A DNA stretch of 64,000 nucleotides from Bugula neritina (GCA_964035545.1 OZ037765.1:16244995-16308994); one strand, 5' to 3'; numbered from the stretch's first letter, positions 1,260-35,300 are shown. Program-made: numbers and translations. The notes: generated by a model not told the origin, from the sequence alone.

Positions 1260-4200
1260 TTAAATTGACTTAGGAGGGTGCCATTTTACTGAACTTAGGC
1301 CTAGGCCCTGAAACTTATTTCTGTTAAAAATGCATCTGTCTAACCAAAGAAAACTACCAAAACATTAAAGAAATATTGGGAAAAATGACCAGCAAAGTAA
1401 CTACATAAATGTGATAGCATGTTGATACTGGAGTACAAAAAAACTATTCAACATAATATTAAGCTCGGCTATAATCTATACTACATTAGTTTTATAATCT
1501 CCACCTAAGAATTGAAAACAACAGCAATATTGTTGACACTTACGGCCTCTTGTAGTCACTGAAACCATATAATCCCATTTCCTCTTCAGGGTTGTGTCCA
1601 GCTTTCCGCTCATTTTCATCAACTGAAAATTAAGCAAAAGACTTCATTTACTTGCATATTATCTAAAAAGTACTAGAAGTCTAATGATGGACATGAAAAA
1701 ATTCAGCAAGCTCTATTCGATGTGGGACTATCTACAAAGTTATTTGTTTTCTATTTCAAATTAATAAATATATAATATGTTTATCAATATGAATAAAGTC
1801 AAAACTTTTAGTGACCATCAGCAAGGTTTGAATTGCTGGACTGTGGTGTGTTATTTTAAGTATTAGAGTGATTTGTTTTCCTTTTAATAATCTACACAAT
1901 TATTGCTGCTACCACTTTCACTTAGCATACCACTTTTAGTTGCTAAGGAGGGTTTGTGTGCATTTCTCTACATAATCATCAGCCACTCCTAAATGTGTTC
2001 TTTGTTTTTTTATTTACTTTTCTCTGATTGGGATGAAGAATATTTAGCCACAAACAAATCTTTTCAGCAGTAAAAAAGTTAAGTCAACATCCAAGATGAC
2101 TGAATTCAATAGAAATCAATGGCTGATCTAATTATTGATGAAGTTCAAAGGCTTGCAAGCACATCACCGGTTTTAACAGATAAGTGCTAATATCCTTGCA
2201 CAGGAAAAGCAATTTAAGTTTATTGGCCTCATGATTGTATGGAATCTCTTTGAATTTGAATCATCAGATATTTATGGTTTTATGTATTTCATAGATCACT
2301 ACACAAGGAGGAAGGAGGCCTTTTCACCAAGTCTTGACATTTCGAATAGCTAGTAGTTTTGTTTAAACAAGTTGTAGCCATTTTTTCTAGAACACAGCTC
2401 TATTTATTTCTAAGCTAATGTCGTAGTTCTCTCGGCTAATAAAATGTATCTATATTGAAACTGCAGGTGTCTTACCATAGTAGTTTTCACCTTGATGTTG
2501 ACGAACACAGCAAGCTATGAGTATGAATATAAGTATAACAAAAAACACAGCTACTATTACTCCAATGAGCCACCAATCCTGAAATCCTGCAGTAACCACA
2601 GTTGTTGATGAGCCTTCTAAAATCAAAAAGTCATTAACTCAACTTCCTGTTTTAAACAAATTCATTAAGAATCATCGACACAGTTTTAGTTTAAAAAATG
2701 CTTTTTGGTAAAAAAAATCACTGTTTATTTTTATTCAACTTATCAGCAACTGGTTGATCCACAGTTATGCAAGAAGAAAAATTATAGTTTTCGTTTTGTT
2801 ATTTTGACACCTAATATGGCTAAAGCTGCCTCAAGCTAAGGAAGAGCATATTAGTAGGAGCAGTTTCCCAGCAACAACTCAACAATAATTTTAAGCATTC
2901 AGTGCATATAATATGCAATATACTTATACTACCAATACTCGCAATATAAAATAATATTGGGCTAAATATAAAGCAATTGAAGTAGTAATTGGTATTAACA
3001 AATCTAGGTTAGGTGAACTTTTGAAATTAAGATATTTTCTATTTAATTTTGATCAAATATTATTAAATACAAATTAACACAAACTATTTTAATGTTTAGA
3101 TCTTCATTTTCCTGCTCAGAATTATTTGGTCCTTTACTAGCCTAATAATATACAGAGTGGAATCTTACTCTCAATAACCAAACTCGTGTTATCAATTGAC
3201 AGCTGTCTCAGCACTGGATCAATTAATATGTAGTCAGGAAGCAAAATAATGGAAAGGATACAAAATTTTGTTAAATGCAGCTGAATTAGATGCATCAAAT
3301 CTAAATGCACTATTGATTTAAATAAATATTTGGGGTAGTTTCTGTCAGCAAATTCATTTTTCCTCTGCGATTTGTTTTGTCATGAAAAGATAAAAACAGT
3401 TGAGTGATTGCTGATGACCTGCTGTAAACATAGAATTATTCTATAAGCAGCTCCGAGTTGGGGGTGAATGAGTGCAGTAGTTTAAAGATCTTGAGTTTAG
3501 AGTTGAAGGTTTAGCAAAACCTCTCCCATTTTAAACTCGAGAACAGCTAACTGCTGCAAAAAAGTGTAAGCTGCTACCGTATGCATAGAGATCCAAAACA
3601 CTGAAATCTGAATTCCCACCTAAATAATTGAATAACAACTTCGATACTAACTTTTAGCTACATCAAAAGGTATCTTCAAACTTTCATAAGACAAAAGTGT
3701 ATCATTTCCATAGAATTTCATGTTGATGACACACCACCAAACACCACCAATGATAGACTTTTGCACAGTTGAATCCAAGTAATCAAACTTGAGAGTTGAA
3801 TACACAGTTCTGTTTTTCCTGTCAAACTTGTAGGTAATAGTCTACAATATATTTTAGTAAATTATCAATTTTCAGTCCAATTATACTGAGCAATGCACAT
3901 AATATTTGATTGATAGATTATTATACATTATCATTTGAATTCTAACCCAGCTAAAAAATGTTAGTAATGTACATCTACATCTATATTTTACTCTATTGCT
4001 GAACAGATTTCTCTTTAAATGTTCTCTGAGTGATAATTGTGTTTAGCTCTCCTGAGATGAAAATATATAAAATAATGTTAAACGAAAGTAGTTCACACTA
4101 ACATGTCATTTACTTTTTGCTTGTTGTTATAGAACAAGTTGACACATGAGAATAGGTTATGCCTTTATACACACATAATTAGCAATTCAATTACACTGGA

Positions 4201-7200: not shown

Positions 7201-10200
7201 ATCATTAGCTAATAAATTTCCTCACCCACAACCAACGCATTGTGTGTGACAGGTTGTTCTCGGATTTTCAAGCACTTGAACCCACATGCAGAAAATGTGT
7301 CAGCCTAGCCTTAATATGGTCACAACAAACGCAAACACACTCTGCATTTTTGTTATACAGAACTTAAAGTACTCATACATAACTATAAAGTAAAAACTAC
7401 ATAAATTTTTTCACATCACATGTTTTGCAAATTACTGTTGTGAATTCAGGCGAAAGAAGGTGATAAAACTACAAATTGTTTTGAGTAACTCACAGAACAC
7501 GTTCAATTGTGCTGAATTAAACATGACGCCAGCATCATTGGTAGCAATGCATGCAATCATAGCAGAGTCATTTCTTTGTACATTCATGAACTTTACTGAA
7601 TCTCTACCACCTGCAAGTATAATAAGGTCTCAATTAATTTAATATTCTAATGCTATTATGTAAAACAACGATGAGTGGATAGTTTATTTTGGGCTTTAAC
7701 AACTAGAGTTAGCTTTGAAGTACACTTGAAATATTTCTTATTCAAAGCTCACAGTTTTATGTACATGATGAAATAAACAAGAAAGGGGGCAGCTGTGATC
7801 TGGGAAGTAGAGCGTTTGCCTAGTAAGCACGTTTGCCTAGTAAGCACGAAGTCATGGGTTCGAACCCTTACAAAGGCCATTGGTGATGTTAGGAAGAACA
7901 TCCAGTCATAATTGCTTCTGTGCCCCATCTGAATAAGTCCTTAGCCGATAAAGGATGGCAACTATAAACTTCCGTGAGGTTTTTTCATGAAATAAACAAG
8001 AAAGGGAGTTTTAAAAATGTTTGAATCCTTATAACAATTACCAGATGGTTATAAACTATTTTTTGTAACTTATTGTTCAATTCTATCTAAGTTCTTATGG
8101 CTGATTTGCAAGGATTTAGTTATTAATATAACTTTTGGTAACTAACAGTGAAACTGCCTCTACCCCAAGTATAACTATCTTTAATGACGTACATTGTAAT
8201 CTTAAATCTTCTTCTTATCATTTTCAAGGTATAGAAAGTATTGGTAGGTAGTGCAGGCTATTAAAAATAACTGTAAAATGGTTTCTTAAAACACTTACTG
8301 TTATATGTTTGTCCATTCACATAATATGTTAGTTTAGTTTTAGGCATTTTAGCACTGCAAGAAAAATCAACATTTTTTCCAACTTCCACAATCCTATCTT
8401 TCATGTCACCAACGTACAACTTTGGATACTGCTTTACAATCACCTGGTAAATAAAGACCAAATTTCTATACAAATTTATCTTCATACTGTTTGAATTTTT
8501 TAAATAAAAACTTTTTACCACCCTATTTATTCAAAAATTTTAACCATCCAGTTATTTCATTAAAACTGAAGTTCTCCTTCTAACAAACAGGAAGGATAAT
8601 ACAACAAATGATCATATTACATACTATATATAACATGCAATGGTGTTAATATGTCTAATTTATATTGCTTTTTATGACAGCCCAGGTTTAAAACATCAAT
8701 TTTTCAACACATGCACTGATACTGGCTATAAAATAGTACAGTTGGTACGTGAATAACACAAAAAGCTTAACAATTCTGCATTTTGTACAGGTGTATTAAA
8801 AGCCACTATTTGTACTCAGTATTTCTTAGAGGAAGTCAGATATAAAGTATTATAAGTTGAATCATTAAAAAATATGTTTGAATTCTACATATTTAACACA
8901 AATGACAGAATTTATTGAAATAAAGTTCAGCGTACCACAATTTTTCATCAGATTAATAGTGGGGCATTCTTGATTTCAACATATTTTACAAGCTGATTCA
9001 AGTTGATAAACATATTATCTTTGCAAATTCCTACTGTACTAGATATTTTTACATAGGTAAAGTTATGCCAGGTTATAGAAATGTTAGCTGTAATGTATGT
9101 ACAAGAATGAAAGTCAATAGAGCTTACATTTATTCTCCCACTACCCTCTTCAGAGTGATTAGTTTTACAAGTCCAAGTACCAGCTGTTTCTTCATAAGCC
9201 GTGAAGTAGACTGTGTTGCCTTTTACTTTAGCGGTTATTGAATTTGATTTGTTAGTGAGTAAGAGACCAGCAGGTGTGTACCAAATGGGAACAGGAGATG
9301 TATTTGAAACACCACTTCTACAGGTCAAAGTAGAAAAAATTCCATTTATCATTTGTTTGTAAGTCTACAAACACTAGGATAATTTATTATTTTATTTTCT
9401 ATGTTGGCAAATTTTGTGCTACTAAGTATCCTTTTAATGCTATAAAATAATTTATCATTGTAGTAGTCACATCTCAACTTCTATTTAAAATCAACCTCTA
9501 TCAGCACATCCTTAAATTGATATATTTGCAGGCAGATGGGAAAAGAAGGAAACATTATGTACAATATTTACCCCCCTCCAAAGATGCAGGTTAATGAACA
9601 AGTTTCTTGTTCTAAACAAGTTACAGTCCGGTCTGCTAAGCTAACAGGGTACATCAGGCGAACAGGTGGTTTCACACTGTTAGTGTTGACCGAAAGCCTA
9701 TGTCGACTAACACTGTGTTGCTCTGGGGAGTCCCCAATACTCATTGTACACTGGTACTGTGGATCCGTGTCTCCATCACCTGTCCGATCTCCATCAATAA
9801 GATAGGTGAAAAATAAATCTCCTGCAAAACGAATACAAGAAAAATAGTAAAGCCAACCAAAAGTGAGCATTTGACAATATTTTTGTGTAATCCTAGGTTT
9901 CAGTTTTTGAGTTGCTAAAAGGGTATTTGTACAGTTATTAAATATTGTGTGTACTACCAGCCTAGTTCTATACTGATAACTCAAAAAAAGTTTTGTTGTG
10001 GGCAATAGGCCAGCTGACAATAAACTGACAACTTTTTTCTACTTGCCAGACAATTTAAGTTTGTCATACTACCCTAAATATGTGGTTTGTTACCTGTTCT
10101 AGGATCAATTTTTATTCTGTCTCCATATTCTATAGACACAAGCCTGTCACCATCATTAATTCGATTAGGAGCGTATATAGCCCATTGAAAAGAGGCTAGA

Positions 10201-20367: not shown

Positions 20368-24891
<4,524 letters not shown>

Positions 24892-26393: not shown

Positions 26394-29300
26394 CTAGTTC
26401 TCTTCAGCAGGGTGCATTTCTAAACTGAACAGTCCAGAGAGAAGCGACATATTTCTAAACTTCTCAAGAGCTCGTTTGAAATCTTGAAGATTCATTTTAC
26501 GAAGAACCGGATTTTCTTCTCCCACCATTTCCCTAGAAACAGAGTACAATTATGATGCTATCCAACACCTGACAATATATCAGAGCAGCAGTCAAAATAT
26601 TAAATAATCTCAACTTAAATTCTTATTATTTTGAGCCCAAAATAAGTAAAGAATTAAAGAATTCCTGACACACTTTACTTATATAGCATGAAAATATTCA
26701 TCTATGTCTTAGCTATCATTTTAACACTCTTTTAGGGTTTCAGGTCTAAACAATTTTGTTTTATAACAGTTTTAGTGCATGCATGTCCAAAAAAACTTCG
26801 AGAATTTTTTTCGCCCTTCTGTGACGTATTACACCGCAGTTGCGAGAAATAGATGGAAACGCCGCCTGTAAGACATTCGGAAAATAAGTATAGGCTATAT
26901 TTTCCGTTGCATGTAACCTTAGTTTTAGCATTTTTAATTTATCGGACGTCTGTCTAGCCCCCCAATTAGTATTTTTTTGTGGAATTTAGGTTTTATTTCA
27001 TAAACAAATTTCGCGGCAATAAATACATAGCTACCAACTTACCGTGTCCGAGTCTGTGCAGTGTAATTGTGATAAAGATAAACCTAATACAGAAATAACA
27101 TAAATACGATATTAATATGAACATATCTGGCTCTGACGAAGAATACTTAGAGCACAGTGAGAATCGCAATGAGTATGACTATGACAATCACACTCACGCT
27201 GTCACTGAGATTTCTGAAGTAATGGGCTATCAGTTTGAGCCGTTTACGTATCAAGATGAAAATGGAGATGATAGTCATGACAAGGATTTTACTGTTACTG
27301 ATGAGCAACAGGTGATAATATTTATAATTTTACAGTATCAGTACGATTTAATTTTATAAACTATAGTGTTACTAATACCGTAATACTAATAGTAATACTA
27401 ATACTAATAGTAATACTTTAACTTTGAGTTATAAGTATAAGCTAGTATAAGTTATAAATTATTATAATTATAATATTTCATTTTCATTTTGTAATCGTAA
27501 TTCCAATGCTCAATGCCAATGCTCGTATTGATCCTGGCTTAATTAGTTAATATAGCTGAGTTTTGTGCTACTAAAGCTTTAGAGCAAGCATGATATCAAA
27601 TTACAAGCTAAATATTTGATGATTGCTATTGGTTTATATAATATTATTAATAATAAAGTGATAATCATTAAATTTAATGATTACAAATTCCAGTCAAGTA
27701 ATTAAATATTTGATCAATACTAATTTTGTTATTACTACTACCAATACAGGTATTAGTATTAATTATTTGTAGTTAGATTTACCTGATAATTTAAGTCAAG
27801 GGAAAGACTGTATTGTTATAAATGCATAATAATGATAATTATTATTCACTTTTATTGTAATTGTGGTTATACCGATCCTTAACAAAATAAGTTAATCACA
27901 TACATAATCATGTCAAACTTGCATTCACGATGATAGCATTTAGTATTTTATTTCTAAGCCCCCTATTTCTCTGAATTTCTGCTTTTATAGTATAACATAT
28001 AGTACTAACAACAATAAAATATTTTAAAATTTCTGAAAATTAGTTTATTTCATAGCAAAAATTATGAGTTTGTTTTAATATAAAAAATCTAATTAATTTT
28101 CAACTATAAATATAAAAATAGTTTGAACAGTAATGCAAACTTGGAATATTTTAAAACCCATGATTTTAAAGTATTTTCAAACTTCAGCCTCATTGGACTC
28201 AATTTTCAATACAAAGAAAAATACAGGAAACAAATTTAGACACAGTAATTAATGGACTTAATGTGGATGATACTGGTAATAACGTTTTTAGAAAAGCTTG
28301 TTTGTTTTGTAGAAAAATATAAGGCCAGCCACGGAGTGGTGCACTTGCCACCGCTGCCAAAATCAGCCTACAGTGGAACAGTCTGTTTGTTGCCGTGATC
28401 ATGCTGCAAACCTTCGATTAGATAGCAGCATGGAATGTATAACACAGCACCCGGGAGTACAGCAATTGACGCAACCAGCTGTATTAGAAGTTGCATACAG
28501 CAGCTACCTGAGATATCATGGTTAGTCAATTGCTACTGTAGATCAGTAACTGTCATTGTTAGTTTTTCTAGATAGTCTTACTTGATTATTTAGCCAATCA
28601 TTTATTTTGGTAGATGATTTGTTTGATGAGAAGGCCCATTCTCTCAACACTAAAAAAAGGTTCTGCAGCTACCGGTTTTTGGTGTTCTGGCTGTTTCCAG
28701 ATATTAAAAAGGGTGAGAGACGCCCTTTACCAGCTTGCTTATACGATTGGGTGCAAGCTACATTCCCCCCAACTGAAGATGAGGAAGAATTTGCTGAATG
28801 GATGTTCAGCAAATTCGTGTACAATGAAGATTTATGAACATTAACACTCTGGTGATTTTTAGTAGCAGTCAGTTGCTACTGCCTCTTGTAGTGTGTACAG
28901 CTTACTATGAGAATAAACCTCATTATTTGCAATCTCCCTGACCTTTGAAATTAATTTACCGTTGAGTTTGAGTTGCAATAATGGTGAATATACTTCAATA
29001 TGGTGACTATTTTTGCGCTGAACTTTTCAAGTGACTCTAAGATCATATTCTACAATATCTACATTTCAATGGAAACTGAGACTACAAGTAGATATATTGT
29101 CCAAATTTATTTTTGACACACCTTGAGGTGGAAAATTAAAAATATTATTTCCATTACACAAAAATATTTGGTTTTTTGTTGCATTAGAACATGCATTTTA
29201 AATAAAAATAAATATGGAGAAAAGCTATGAATTCAGTTTTTGAGCTAAGTGAACAATACTATTTCGCCATATTTCTATATACCAGCATTGAACAGCTTTG

Positions 29301-32300
29301 CTTCTAATCTTTTTCTGCATCCTTTTAGGTGTTTGCACATATTTGTTGTGTCCTATTCCTTTCTGTAGGCCCTTCTTTTCTGGCTTACGATGGAGAGCTG
29401 GTTTTTTTGTTTGACTTGGCAAAGCTCTAAAATATTATTATATATGAAGGTAACTGGAAAAGTATTATTGAAACAGCTGCAGAAAATCTCCATTGCTGTC
29501 TATATCATATTTCAATTTTATTGCTCAAGATCGCATTTTCAATATTATAATCCTTACAGAAAACCAGGGTCTGTTCTTTTTAACCAGCGAGCTTCTTTAG
29601 GTGTGATAGTGGCCGCCTGCTGACTTTGTTTCCGAGGAGTTAATGGAGTGCATCCAGTTGCACCCTCAGTTTCCACTAAATGAATAGTTGGGACTGCTGT
29701 TTTCTCTAAATGCAATCTAAAGAGTAAATCAAAGACAATGAATTTTTATTCTTTCAATAAGTGAACAATATTTACCATTAATTTTTACTGGTATTGATGA
29801 TGGGCACCATTACCAGTATCATACTCATAGCATGAGTATCAGTGCGTATGAATCATAATATTAATGGTATGTATCCAAGTGACTATGACACATTCTGATA
29901 ATCATAAGTCTTTCATATTATCGCCATTATAAATGAATTTCCTTACAATAATGGTTATCGTGTAAATCATAAATGCAAACTTGTACTTGCAAGTTTATGT
30001 CATAGTCACATGAAATTGAATCAACACGGTCATGACAATCCTATTGACTTATACCAACTTGTAGTAATACTTGATAGTTATAGTTATACTTATTGTTGAA
30101 AATCAACATTAAAAAAACTATCATTAGCCTATCGTCTAATTATATCACAATCACTAAGTCATTAGTCAGTATCACTATGACTATGAGTTTGAGTGAGTTA
30201 TTCACTTACATGTTAATGAGTTTTGCTTTATACATGCCCATGTTTGTAAATTGTTCATCACCAAAATGCTGAAAACACAAACGAGAGTTGTTATCAGGCA
30301 GAAAGTTTTTTCTTTTCGTATTGACAAACTTGGTCCATTTTTCACCACACGCAGTATCAGCAGGCCATTTAAACATCAACATGTGTTTTTCCTTGTACGA
30401 ACACATTGCAGCTTCACACACTCTTCTTTTGCATTTGCCTTTAGAACTTGAAGCCATTCGTGTAGTCATGTCGACAGTAAGTGTAACTAGTAATATAGGT
30501 AATAAGTTTGTTCATTAGAGTCCAATGGCAATATGAATATGAAATCTAATTTATATAGATAGCGAGCGACTACTACTAGTAGTAGTACTACTAGGCACAG
30601 GTTATATTGGTAATATCCGGTTACGGTAATGATAATCTATTTGGAAGCGTAATAATATGCAATTATTTGTAATGTTTTATAGAAAAGTTTACCACTCGTT
30701 AGATTTAGCTAATTTCTTTCAACAATATCGTGTTATCGCCGTACTTAGCCACCCGTTCTAATTACATCGTGAGGGTGAGGCTATTTCATTTTTCCGATGC
30801 TCAAAATTTCTAACGGAAGTAACTTTAGCTCTTAATATCAATAATAAAATGGTATCATTTGTTTTTTTCATTGAGCCTTAGTTGTACTCTGTGTTTTAAA
30901 ATTTATGTCAGTTTAGTGATTTATCTGTGTGTTGCAGTGGCTAAAAATAAAACGCTGTGAAAGTATGCAATTATTACTATTAGTTATATAGTAACTAGGA
31001 CTCGAAGCAGACCGGAAACCGGCGTAATACGTGTGCACTGAGAGCTTAGAAATCCGAAAGTTTTCTGGACATGCATGCACTAATCTTGTTATAAAACAAA
31101 ATAGTCTAGCCATCCACCCTCAAAGGGGTGGTCTAGTGATAGCTAAGATATAGATGAATATTTTCGTGCTATATAAGTAAAGTGTGTCAGGGATTCTTTA
31201 AGCATTTTGACTGCAGTAATCTTTATTACCAAAAATTATTGAGCAGTCATTTTTAAAACCAAATGAAGCACAATCTCTTAAGCTTTTGAGAGAAAATTCC
31301 CATATATTTTGAAGTAGGCACAATTGAATAGCACTAACTTCAGTGAAACTTGATTTACAACTTGACCAAATTTTCAGCTATCTGATAATTTTTGAACTAT
31401 CTATCATCACTCATTTCTACATTAATAAAATTATTTCCACTCAACACAGTATTTAATAATATAGTTTACTAATAATATCTACTAATAAAAATATTGCTCA
31501 AACCTAGCTGCTGGCTCATTATTGATGTAGTCCCGGACTCTGAATAATGCGGCATGACGGCATAACTCCTTCAGATCACTTCCTGACAAACCATCACAAT
31601 TGGCAGCCATCTCTTTGATCACAGATGCTTTATTAGTGATATCCTCATTTCGAAGCACCACTTGCAATATTTTTTCTCGTTCTGATTCAGTCTAAGAATA
31701 TATACATAAAACTGATTGATATATAAGGCTGATAGCTAAAACATAACATAACTCAGCAAAAGGCTATTCAAACAAGTCATATAACTATTTTGAAGATGGA
31801 AGTGAACCTGATTAATGCACAGATTGCAAATACAAATAAAATGATTAATATAGATTTATGCTTTCCCCTTCAACTACTTTTAAAATAAAAGAAACTAAAA
31901 TAACATTAACAAATCAATTGTAAGTGCATAATTTTTATTTACATATTACAAAATAATAAGCTACTGTGTGTTTTCATATACTAAGCCTATTTCAAATGTT
32001 TTTGAATATAAATAAAAATATTTTATATAACATGACTCATTTTTTAAACATTTAAACTATTGAAAAATATTATTGTTGATATTTATCAATTATATTTATA
32101 GATGCATAGCTGTGTCGGTTAATATTTGGGTCCTGCCCCAAAAGAAGTCAAGTTGCAAGTTATAATTCTGATCTCTATATTAATTTTTAACAAATATCGA
32201 AAAAAAATCTTCAGGCAGAAAAATCATTTTGTTATATATTTTTCTTTCTTTCTGAGTTTAAGCAGAGACAAGTGCAATTCTGGTTGACTACTAATATTAT

Positions 32301-35300
32301 ATGCGAAATGTTTTCTTGCTAGCTAGGTTAGATGAAATACATTTATAGGAGCTATAATTCTAAAACTAGGTAAAAGAATATTTAAAATAGGTTTGCTCAG
32401 ATGAAAACACATTTACATGAGCTGTACCTGCTTATAGTAATGATAACTTATACAGCTCCCAGTATGACATTATTTTATAAATCAATAGAGGCTTTTCACA
32501 AGCCCTCTGGGGACATTTGTATTTTGAAGTTGTCTCCTCCCAGAAGGGCGAAGTGTGGTCTCCATGATATATAGAACAAGCACATAAAATCAGTAGAAAT
32601 TTAAGGTTTGTGGGAAGACTATTGCTAGTACGAGTTTCATTTTTTCTGAGATTAATATTTTGGCATAAGCACACAGGTTAGCAGTTCCAGAAAATTTTTA
32701 AAAATTTTCTTTCTTCAAAAATCTTGAGAAAAATTAACTTCAAAGCATGTTTGTGGTTTTGGTTACTGCATGAGCAAGCTGAATTGGCAACTATGAGATA
32801 AGTCCCATTAATCAGTTGTTATGCTGGCTGTCATATTCAATTTATAGCTGTTGACCTTTCAACTCTTTGGTCAGAATGTGCTGTTAACACAGTGTTAGAG
32901 CACTGCTACTCTGCTAGTGCACTGAATGAGACAGCAGATTAGCTGTGTTAGCATTTTCATTACACTTACACACTTATGCTATGATAATAGCTAGACTATA
33001 ACCTCAACATCCATCATTTTCACAAAAAGCATTTTCACAAAGCTATAGATATATATTAAATATAGACAGATTAAATTTGTAGTATCAAAATGATGCGTGA
33101 TAGCATGTGCACTTAATTACACTTTGAAGAGTTTGTGCTACATTATGTTCAAAGGACCGTAAATGCTTTACATAGTTTCATGTTATGGCTAAAACTTCTT
33201 TAAAAGAAAAATATTACCAAGAAAAGCAAAGCTCAGTTTATGCAAAAATTTATTAAAAATGCTTTATATTTAGGCAGGCATCTTTTCATTCAGTATCGAT
33301 CCATCTTGAAATAATTTGTCTGCTCTAAATCTTCATTGCATATTTTACAACAGGTCTAATAGTTTTATTTAAAAGGTTTAATTGAAATGTTATACTTGAT
33401 TTTAACTTACATATCCTCGCGCATGCCTATTTTAAGATAATACCTGTAATATTCTAATTGGTGCTGTCGTGACTTATAGCCACACTCTAAAATTTTATGT
33501 CATTCAAATATGAGTCTCAAATTTAAGAAAGGCTTTATATTTTATAACATTTTGTGACCCATGGGATCAGCCAAGCTAGTTGCATAACTGCAGTTGAGTG
33601 TCAATAACACTAGCTCATGATATTTGAAGCATGAGAAGTTGAGGAGCTATAACATTAAACAGTTTAACTGAAAACCCAAGCAAAATGTTAATAACCCAAT
33701 TTTATCAACATGCTTTCACTGCTTCACTTGTAAGAATCTGCTTAATACTTTTCAACCAGAATTTCCTTCTAAAGTAATTGTCAGAGAATTCAGTTTATGC
33801 TGCAATTTGATGAGTTGGGAAACTTGGGCTTTCAGGTGCAGTAGTGATTAGCTTAGTTTACTTATTTTATATTGTATATCCATTTTATTATATAACTATA
33901 CTTTAACCTACCATACATTAACTAGGATCTTGAATCTACTGCAGTTGACGGAGATGACTACTACACACAAGGTAGATGCAGTACTAATGGAGAAATTGAG
34001 AAAAGCCTTTTTTCTAGATTAGAAATGTAGCAAAAAAGTTGTGTTATACGCAACACCAACATTCGTAAAGAAAGTTAAAGAACTTAGGCTATCTCAATTT
34101 CTTCACTACTGTATGCTCCTAAATGCTACAAGCCACAGGCATAATTAAGAAATAACAAAGCTGCATGTAACCCAAGGGCCTGAATGCCAACTGCTAAAAG
34201 GCTATCTCGGTTTCTGATTAAATTATCTAGATATATATTTATTTGAGCACAATTGTTACAATTGCAATAGATGCATTTAACCTGTATTAGAAAATTAACC
34301 GACATGTATCAAAGCACATTTCATATTCGTTCTATACTACAAATTTAATCTGTCTATTTAATATAATATATCTATAGCTTTGTGAAAATGCTTTTTGTGA
34401 AAATGATGGATGTTGAGGTTATAGTCTAGCTATTCTCATAGCATAAGTGTAATGAAAATGCTAACACAGCTAATCTGCTGTCTCATTCAGTGCACTAGCA
34501 GAGTAGCAGTGCTCTAACACTGTTTTAACAGCACATTCTGACCAAAGAGTTGAAAGGTCAACAGCTATAAATTAAATATGACAGCCAGCATAACAAATGA
34601 TTAATGGGACTTATCTCATAGTTGCCAATTCAACTTGCTCATGTAGTAACCAAAACCACAAACATGCTTTGAAGTTAATTTTTCTCAAGATTTTTGAAAA
34701 AAGAAAATTTTTAAAAATTTTCTGGAACTGCTAACCTGTGTGCTTATGCCAAAATATTAATCTCAGAAAAAATGAAACTGGTACTAGCAATAGTCTTCCC
34801 ACAAACCTCAAATTTCTACTGATTTTATGTGCTTGTTCTATAAATCATGGAGACTACACTTCGCCCTTCTGGGAGGAGACAACTTCAAAATACAAATGTC
34901 CCCAGAGGGCTTGTGAAAAGCCCCTATTAGAGATGCAAAAGGATTGGCTTACTGGTAAGTTTATTTGTAACATGCAGGGCATTCGCCTTCTGAAAGCTGG
35001 GTCTACATCCATTGGCCTGTTAGTAGCACCCATGATTAGGATTTTGTGACTAGCATCTGTTGTTAGACCATCCCACAAACTCATGAACTGTGCCTTAACC
35101 ATAGCAGTAGACTCATGGTCGTTAGTATTACGGGCACGTAAGAAAGCATCTAAAGGTACAAAGACAAGATAATATGTACAACTGAAGCTTAGCATTTTAA
35201 TTATTATACTAAAACCTAAATGATCTGAAACACAGAACTTGTACAGCGTAAGGGAAATCGTTGTCAGGAGTTGCTTGAACCTGACTTACAACACAAATGT

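Follow-up and report, generated by a model that had tools for sequence, protein, structure and literature searches.

A traceable deletion series of a young, non-autonomous Kol0 Kolobok family with KolX and THAP exons in the bryozoan Bugula neritina

Kol0 Kolobok transposons encode KolX, an accessory protein of this lineage (Kojima and Bao, PMC9587614), and their transposase begins with a THAP domain, which is defined by a C2CH finger, P, W and F residues and an AVPTIF box (PMC6004289). Internally deleted relatives of other DNA transposons have been described in maize and among P elements, and genes domesticated from Kolobok are also known. Here, we analyzed a 64,000-nucleotide stretch of the Bugula neritina genome (OZ037765.1:16244995-16308994, hereafter the window), in which an initial annotation had placed a transposase-less Kolobok-type element with two tail-to-tail genes at 26658-31197. 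The results indicate that the family of this element is Kol0 Kolobok, young and non-autonomous, with a deletion series that can be traced in a bryozoan. The element itself is probably an ordinary internal-deletion derivative of a Kol0 Kolobok of about 8 kb that arose by gap repair and was mobilised in trans.

The window element begins with AG and ends with CT, which are the 5'-RR/YY-3' termini of Kolobok (Kol0), and it is flanked by a TTAA target-site duplication at 26654..26657 on the KolX side and 31198..31201 on the THAP side, as had been annotated. The terminal inverted repeats (TIRs) lie at 26658..26800 on the plus strand and 31055..31197 on the minus strand. The two ends match at 58 of their 61 outermost base pairs, so the near-perfect identity first described was seen; the length of 61 bp was not, as the TIR continues for 143 bp ungapped at about 84% and for about 180 bp when gaps are allowed, with faint similarity up to about 26836. 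Moreover, no DDE coding sequence lies between the two genes, in agreement with the first reading. The DDE core and the H2CH finger are absent from the window copy and are carried by two relatives, L023 (partly) and L058. The window copy is a non-autonomous derivative.

To establish the origin of this derivative, we compared it with L023, a 7,419-bp element of the same genome that has the same TIRs, a TTAA site and 97% identity to the window copy. The two align as two collinear 97% blocks with a 3-bp overlap, which identifies an internal deletion of the Ds-del type. The junction maps to 29054..29056, where 3 bp of microhomology (ATT on the minus strand) mark the loss of 2,846 bp relative to L023 and of about 3.4 kb relative to the predicted parent. 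Beside it, 28838..29053 is a remnant of the zone in which the 3' ends of KolX and the transposase converge; it aligns with L023 5297-5516, 3' of the apparent transposase stop of the parent. Within the extra 2,846 bp of L023 lie transposase exons encoding the second Asp (TTDRH), DxxH and the Glu (ESFHA), and a His-His-Cys-His motif that we read as H2CH. In trees of both arms, L023 groups with the clade of the window copy at 100/99. The annotated internally deleted Kolobok derivative with KolX is supported, placed in Kol0 and assigned a parent.

L023 was rejected as the active parent itself, since filler takes the place of its first-Asp exon and its KolX is frameshifted. The filler, 101 bp at an internal deletion (L023:3744-3844 vs 7727-7827), exactly reproduces the flanking sequence of L023 in inverted orientation. 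L058, a contig of another Bugula sample, is 96-97% identical to L023, bears two frameshifts and adds the absent 638 bp with the first-Asp exon; because L058 supplies this exon, the parent would have measured about 7.95 kb. The parent carries its two genes in a tail-to-tail arrangement, KolX near one terminus and an intron-rich THAP-DDE transposase near the opposite one. We also considered whether DDE exons were hidden in the 283 bp that the window copy lacks relative to 4.85-kb copies, and rejected this because that DNA is intron 3 and 3' sequence.

The same tail-to-tail plan was observed in more distant elements. L051 (G000:C6:5892000-5901900) is a Kol0 element rich in introns that contains KolX and the full set of THAP-DDE exons; as its ends were not located and no similarity to the TIRs of the window family was found in it, it was rejected as the mobilising element. 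A relative of L051 at C5:13.49 Mb is 90% identical to it in the first-Asp exon. In Watersipora subatra, a 4.2-kb Kol0 copy (L064:8594-12796) has TTAA, TIRs and the plan of the parent; its decayed transposase breaks off past the second Asp, where an inverted piece of KolX follows. Matches to PF20700 elsewhere in the genome are single-exon transposases unlinked to the window family.

Genome searches, in each of which the best 40 candidates were scored, recovered 22 long copies with 92-100% identity, and each of the 21 that were fetched is bordered by TTAA at both ends and has flanks of its own. A terminus pattern gave 319 genome matches vs 0 for the control, which implies that many short relatives exist. 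Eight copies, the window copy among them, form a clade with 0-0.6% divergence and one shared deletion junction; one member, on another contig, is 100% identical to the window copy over 4,540 bp. Because these eight copies carry the window junction at eight TTAA sites, the derivative was mobilised in trans after the deletion, and the amplification about which the initial annotation had asked is seen in 8 of the 22 long copies. The sister copies L025 and L027 have a common THAP frameshift, so a copy with a broken THAP gene apparently still moved. An older subfamily, about 7% diverged (L034, L040 and, from another assembly, L054), has the same two-gene layout with a different junction, and derivatives shorter than 1.2 kb with TTAA (L039 type) are also present. 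An 88% identical element was found in a Bugula neritina draft assembly. Collectively, the family is young and apparently still mobile.

Further rearrangements were observed among the copies. L021 and L022 each have one arm in one clade and the other arm in another, which suggests mosaic copies formed by template switching or gene conversion. The old copies L038 and L040 contain inserted sequence of a Gypsy-like long terminal repeat retrotransposon. Insertions of 6 bp, in which 1-2 spacer bases accompany a tandem duplication of 4-5 bp, are very frequent in young copies, affect exons as well as introns and occur even at less than 0.6% divergence; one such insertion lies in frame in THAP exon 1 of the window copy at about 30377-30382. 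These insertions resemble the footprints left when another DNA transposon excises, or the outcome of a strong mutational bias; they may be a source of the hexamer-rich introns in this genome.

We then examined the two genes, with database searches made exon by exon and spliced models joined solely for translation and for comparison with the fetched loci. The KolX gene, on the plus strand, comprises exon 1 (27117..27311), exon 2 (28313..28520) and exon 3 with the stop (28614..28837), and the model is open, encodes 208 amino acids and has GT-AG introns. Exon 1 encodes an acidic N-terminus (29% D+E), exon 2 the six cysteines of the P2X7-ballast Zn cluster (Cys 75, 77, 80, 91, 92 and 107), and exon 3 the seventh (Cys 176) in an LPAC motif. 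These seven cysteines are arranged as in the P2X7 ballast, as in Kol0. Matches to PF20478 remained below the cut-off for exon 2 (E 0.0059) and exon 3 (E 0.0023); exon 3 also aligned weakly to P2X7 chains (6u9v, E 0.02) and has 49 relatives at E<=0.001. Exon 2 had no matches in the PDB, and a metagenome scan had none. Three of the four KolX relatives inspected for genomic context lie on contigs too short to show it. In RNA contigs from a related copy, both introns were spliced (junctions 27311/28313 and 28520/28614), together in one contig, and intron 2 was also spliced in another study; the P2X7-ballast-like, open and spliced gene first proposed is borne out. Separately, more than 100 near-identical places in the genome hold a 39-codon fragment resembling KolX exon 3 with a stop, and C6:12.94 Mb holds a tandem run of KolX-like exons; both probably represent another high-copy Kolobok derivative.

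The minus-strand gene starts at 30469 and holds the first three transposase exons, the 5' quarter of the transposase. Exon 1 (30210..30469) encodes the THAP C2CH finger (PF05485, E 6e-6, above the cut-off), and exon 2 (29558..29716, donor at 29557) encodes the AVPTIH box of THAP and then a linker; the THAP residues C18, C23, C65, H68, P36 and W45 are all present. The initial annotation had described a stand-alone THAP gene. The corresponding model, of 140 amino acids ending in exon 2 (about 29554), was abandoned because exon 2 splices on at 29557: the 131-bp intron 29557-29427 is removed in RNA contigs of three runs, aligned to copy L030, as one joint in one run and as pieces stopping at exon edges in two others. 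The exon 1/2 junction (30210/29716) was not among the RNA joints listed. The third exon (29426-29283) encodes a basic linker ending KIRSKAVQC. In the parent, exon 3 joins the acidic exon 4 in frame; in the window copy, all sequence past transposase intron 3 is gone and the donor has lost its downstream exon. The THAP exon therefore splices on, as the first reading had allowed, and it does not lead into a DDE domain here. The simplest THAP product would be a predicted 206-amino-acid read-through of intron 3 to the stop at 29225 (exon 3 with read-through, 29225..29426), consisting of THAP and a basic, low-complexity linker. With this read-through, the interval of about 700 bp first measured between the two stops shortens to about 390 bp. 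Intron 3 sequence is present in RNA contigs, none of which spans the exon 3 donor by 31 letters.

The ordinary deletion origin that we favor would begin with excision of the parent. Gap repair would then proceed from both ends towards the middle and, when it occasionally aborts, the two arms would be joined through filler DNA or at microhomology of a few bases. Short-overlap or filler junctions are a signature of aborted gap repair after excision, and of the seven primary breakpoint pairs found among the copies, five overlap by 3-5 bp and the others contain filler. Several of these deletions cannot derive from one another, since each retains sequence that the other lacks; shared intermediates could reduce the independent events to three. 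Because each gene begins near a TIR, a central loss would strip the catalytic exons and spare KolX and the THAP exons. Still bearing both TIRs, the shortened element would then have moved to new TTAA sites by cut and paste, with transposase provided in trans, presumably by the parent family. The two open reading frames (ORFs) would be open because the clade is very young and would decay in older copies, and any THAP-only or KolX product would be a by-product. In the old junctions, the filler (L040 ~3146-3200; L054 ~10128-10192) contains about 18 bp of the element terminus, and the break lies exactly at the exon 4 acceptor.

Several observations weigh against this origin. No intact parent of about 8 kb was found in the assembly of the window, and no first-Asp exon of the family was found there, where only distant families matched at 40-47%; given the missing exon, the intact, active source would be absent from this haplotype or recently lost. 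In addition, the breakpoints are crowded. On the THAP side, the seven deletions retain arms of 2,150-2,799 bp, and the read-through stop lies at 1,979 from that end; on the KolX side, the arms measure 2,167-2,614 bp and the KolX stop lies at 2,204 from the end. Intron 3 contains six of the seven THAP-side breaks, and those on the KolX side gather around the stop of that gene. This clustering, over ranges picked after the data had been seen and in searches with 40 candidates scored each, is tighter than under uniform deletion (0/40,001 simulations for seven events, 0.004 if three are independent), which leaves it unexplained by the uniform expectation. Among the 40 best candidates per search, young derivatives with arms of 0.75-2.1 kb were lacking. 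Finally, THAP exons 1-3 show 15 synonymous and 23 non-synonymous changes among copies, a ratio of non-synonymous to synonymous rates (dN/dS) of 0.51 (p 0.035-0.04 uncorrected), and significance is lost once two genes are corrected for. A recent deletion without selection, the null hypothesis of the initial annotation, thus fits most of the data and leaves the breakpoint clustering and the borderline THAP ratio unexplained.

The clustering could stem from a limit on repair length or size, from a requirement in cis, or from selection for the products. Most simply, the tight zone would reflect a limit on repair tracts or element length, with arms of 2.2-2.8 kb and a total below 5 kb. It is rather improbable that mobilisation depends on sequence or transcription distributed over the outermost 2 kb of each arm, such as promoters or internal binding sites, with sizes above about 5 kb penalised, so that amplification would be confined to derivatives retaining both arms, with the genes as passengers. 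Such a constraint is consistent with the arm sums of 4,573-4,998 bp and the anti-correlation of the arms over the seven deletions (Spearman -0.89, p 0.007), and it would reconcile clustering with neutral ORF decay. However, the L039-type derivatives and the 319 terminus matches suggest that the ends alone are enough, and a 7.4-kb copy also inserted recently.

Selection for the products is somewhat more plausible than a cis constraint, although still unlikely. A THAP-only protein would occupy transposase sites and damp transposition in a KP-like manner, and/or KolX would be supplied in trans, with host-level selection keeping both genes. We consider it equally doubtful that Kol0 repeatedly sheds exactly the catalytic exons to form a mobile module of a THAP-only binder and KolX, retained for regulating or assisting the family in trans. 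The breaks cluster just beyond both ORFs, also in the older subfamily; the THAP motifs are complete, with dN/dS about 0.5; and a deleted P element encodes a 207-amino-acid repressor, KP (PMC7776569). KP dimerises, according to a title cited in PMC7776569, whereas a crude heptad scan after THAP detected no leucine-zipper-like heptads here (best, 4/8 hydrophobic a/d positions). Moreover, at least one ORF is lost in 14 of 21 copies, with THAP broken in nine, and both are intact in 6/8 young copies vs 1/13 others. KolX changes neutrally among copies (11 synonymous, 29 non-synonymous, dN/dS 0.86, p 0.39; 0.94 on singletons). Substitution density is 0.069 in coding vs 0.079 in non-coding sequence (p 0.31), and 14/25 coding vs 22/46 non-coding indels keep the frame (p 0.62); in-frame indels were rejected as a sign of selection because the 6-bp insertions are equally common in introns. 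Between subfamilies, KolX is under purifying selection (dN/dS 0.2-0.42), which argues that it matters to the lineage; however, such constraint is expected from autonomous ancestors alone, if these needed both proteins. Neutral ORF decay favors a repair-length or size limit, or a cis requirement, over selection for the products.

The RNA contigs, which carry neither strand nor level, bear on the same question. Exon 2/3 splicing occurs in three runs, and in one run shallow pieces differ from the young family at 0-1 positions: one is identical to it, one lies at the exon 3 edge, and one covers sequence that the clade of the window lacks. However, among the listed variants, 0/23 match the window copy and 33/39 match the older L054 type. 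The main spliced transcript is that of the older subfamily, the spliced contigs could not be assigned to the subfamily of the window copy, and L054, the genomic copy that best matches the RNA, has frameshifts in both genes. With this transcript, the missing zipper and the loss of one or both ORFs in most older copies, the KP-like repressor suggested at first is not upheld.

The element lies in the last intron (26533..31503; in-frame GT/AG) of a host AAA-ATPase gene on the minus strand; this intron measures 4,971 bp with the element and 427 bp without it, and the last exon is 26532-26394. The upstream exons match Pfam AAA and AAA_lid_3, and from its motifs we read the gene as Msp1/ATAD1-like. 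Early domestication of the window copy in this gene, as raised in the initial annotation, is very improbable. Both ORFs are open and the THAP gene runs in the direction of the host gene. However, the copy is one of eight near-identical copies, its identical twin lies elsewhere, and no RNA variant links a transcript to it. Domestication was rejected on the 22 copies, the intact TIRs and the near-neutral change among copies; a domesticated gene would be non-repetitive and conserved by purifying selection. Within the ATAD1-like gene, 32484-33054 and 34366-34928 form a 98% identical inverted duplication that includes part of an exon, and a Cupin_8/JmjC gene (22291-24721, plus strand) lies tail to tail with it.

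We know of no function for KolX, the source of the P2X7 ballast domain. The present family unites a parent transposase, a KolX selected between subfamilies and natural DDE-less substrates, which makes it possible to design a transposition assay in the presence vs absence of KolX. Should the breakpoint clustering turn out to reflect selection, the window element would represent a regulatory derivative of the KP kind from a different superfamily; if the two-gene module were real, the seven converging deletions would be the mark of selection and a handle on the role of KolX.

Compared with known systems, the window element shares its protein parts with domesticated Kolobok genes, namely Xenopus XKol (PMC6004289) and Nanor and the P2X7 C-terminus, which derive from KolX (PMC9587614). 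These genes are non-repetitive and conserved by selection, whereas the window element is multicopy, TIR-flanked and decaying. Similar to KP, it is a high-copy deletion derivative with a potential THAP product of about 200 amino acids; in contrast to KP, it has no detected zipper-like segment, its ORF is broken in 9 of 21 copies and it belongs to another superfamily. Maize Ds-del (PMC3260210) and deleted P elements (PMC7776569) likewise keep both ends, lack the middle, are mobilised in trans and show short homology or filler at the junction, but the window element retains an entire second gene and its breaks are limited to a narrow central zone. Finally, the TTAA target, the RR..YY ends, a KolX with the ballast cysteines and a THAP-led transposase are those of Kol0 Kolobok elements of the Kolobok-1_XT type (PMC9587614). 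In contrast to these elements, the window copy has no DDE or H2CH exons, both of its genes are intron-rich, and several separate deleted two-gene versions have amplified.

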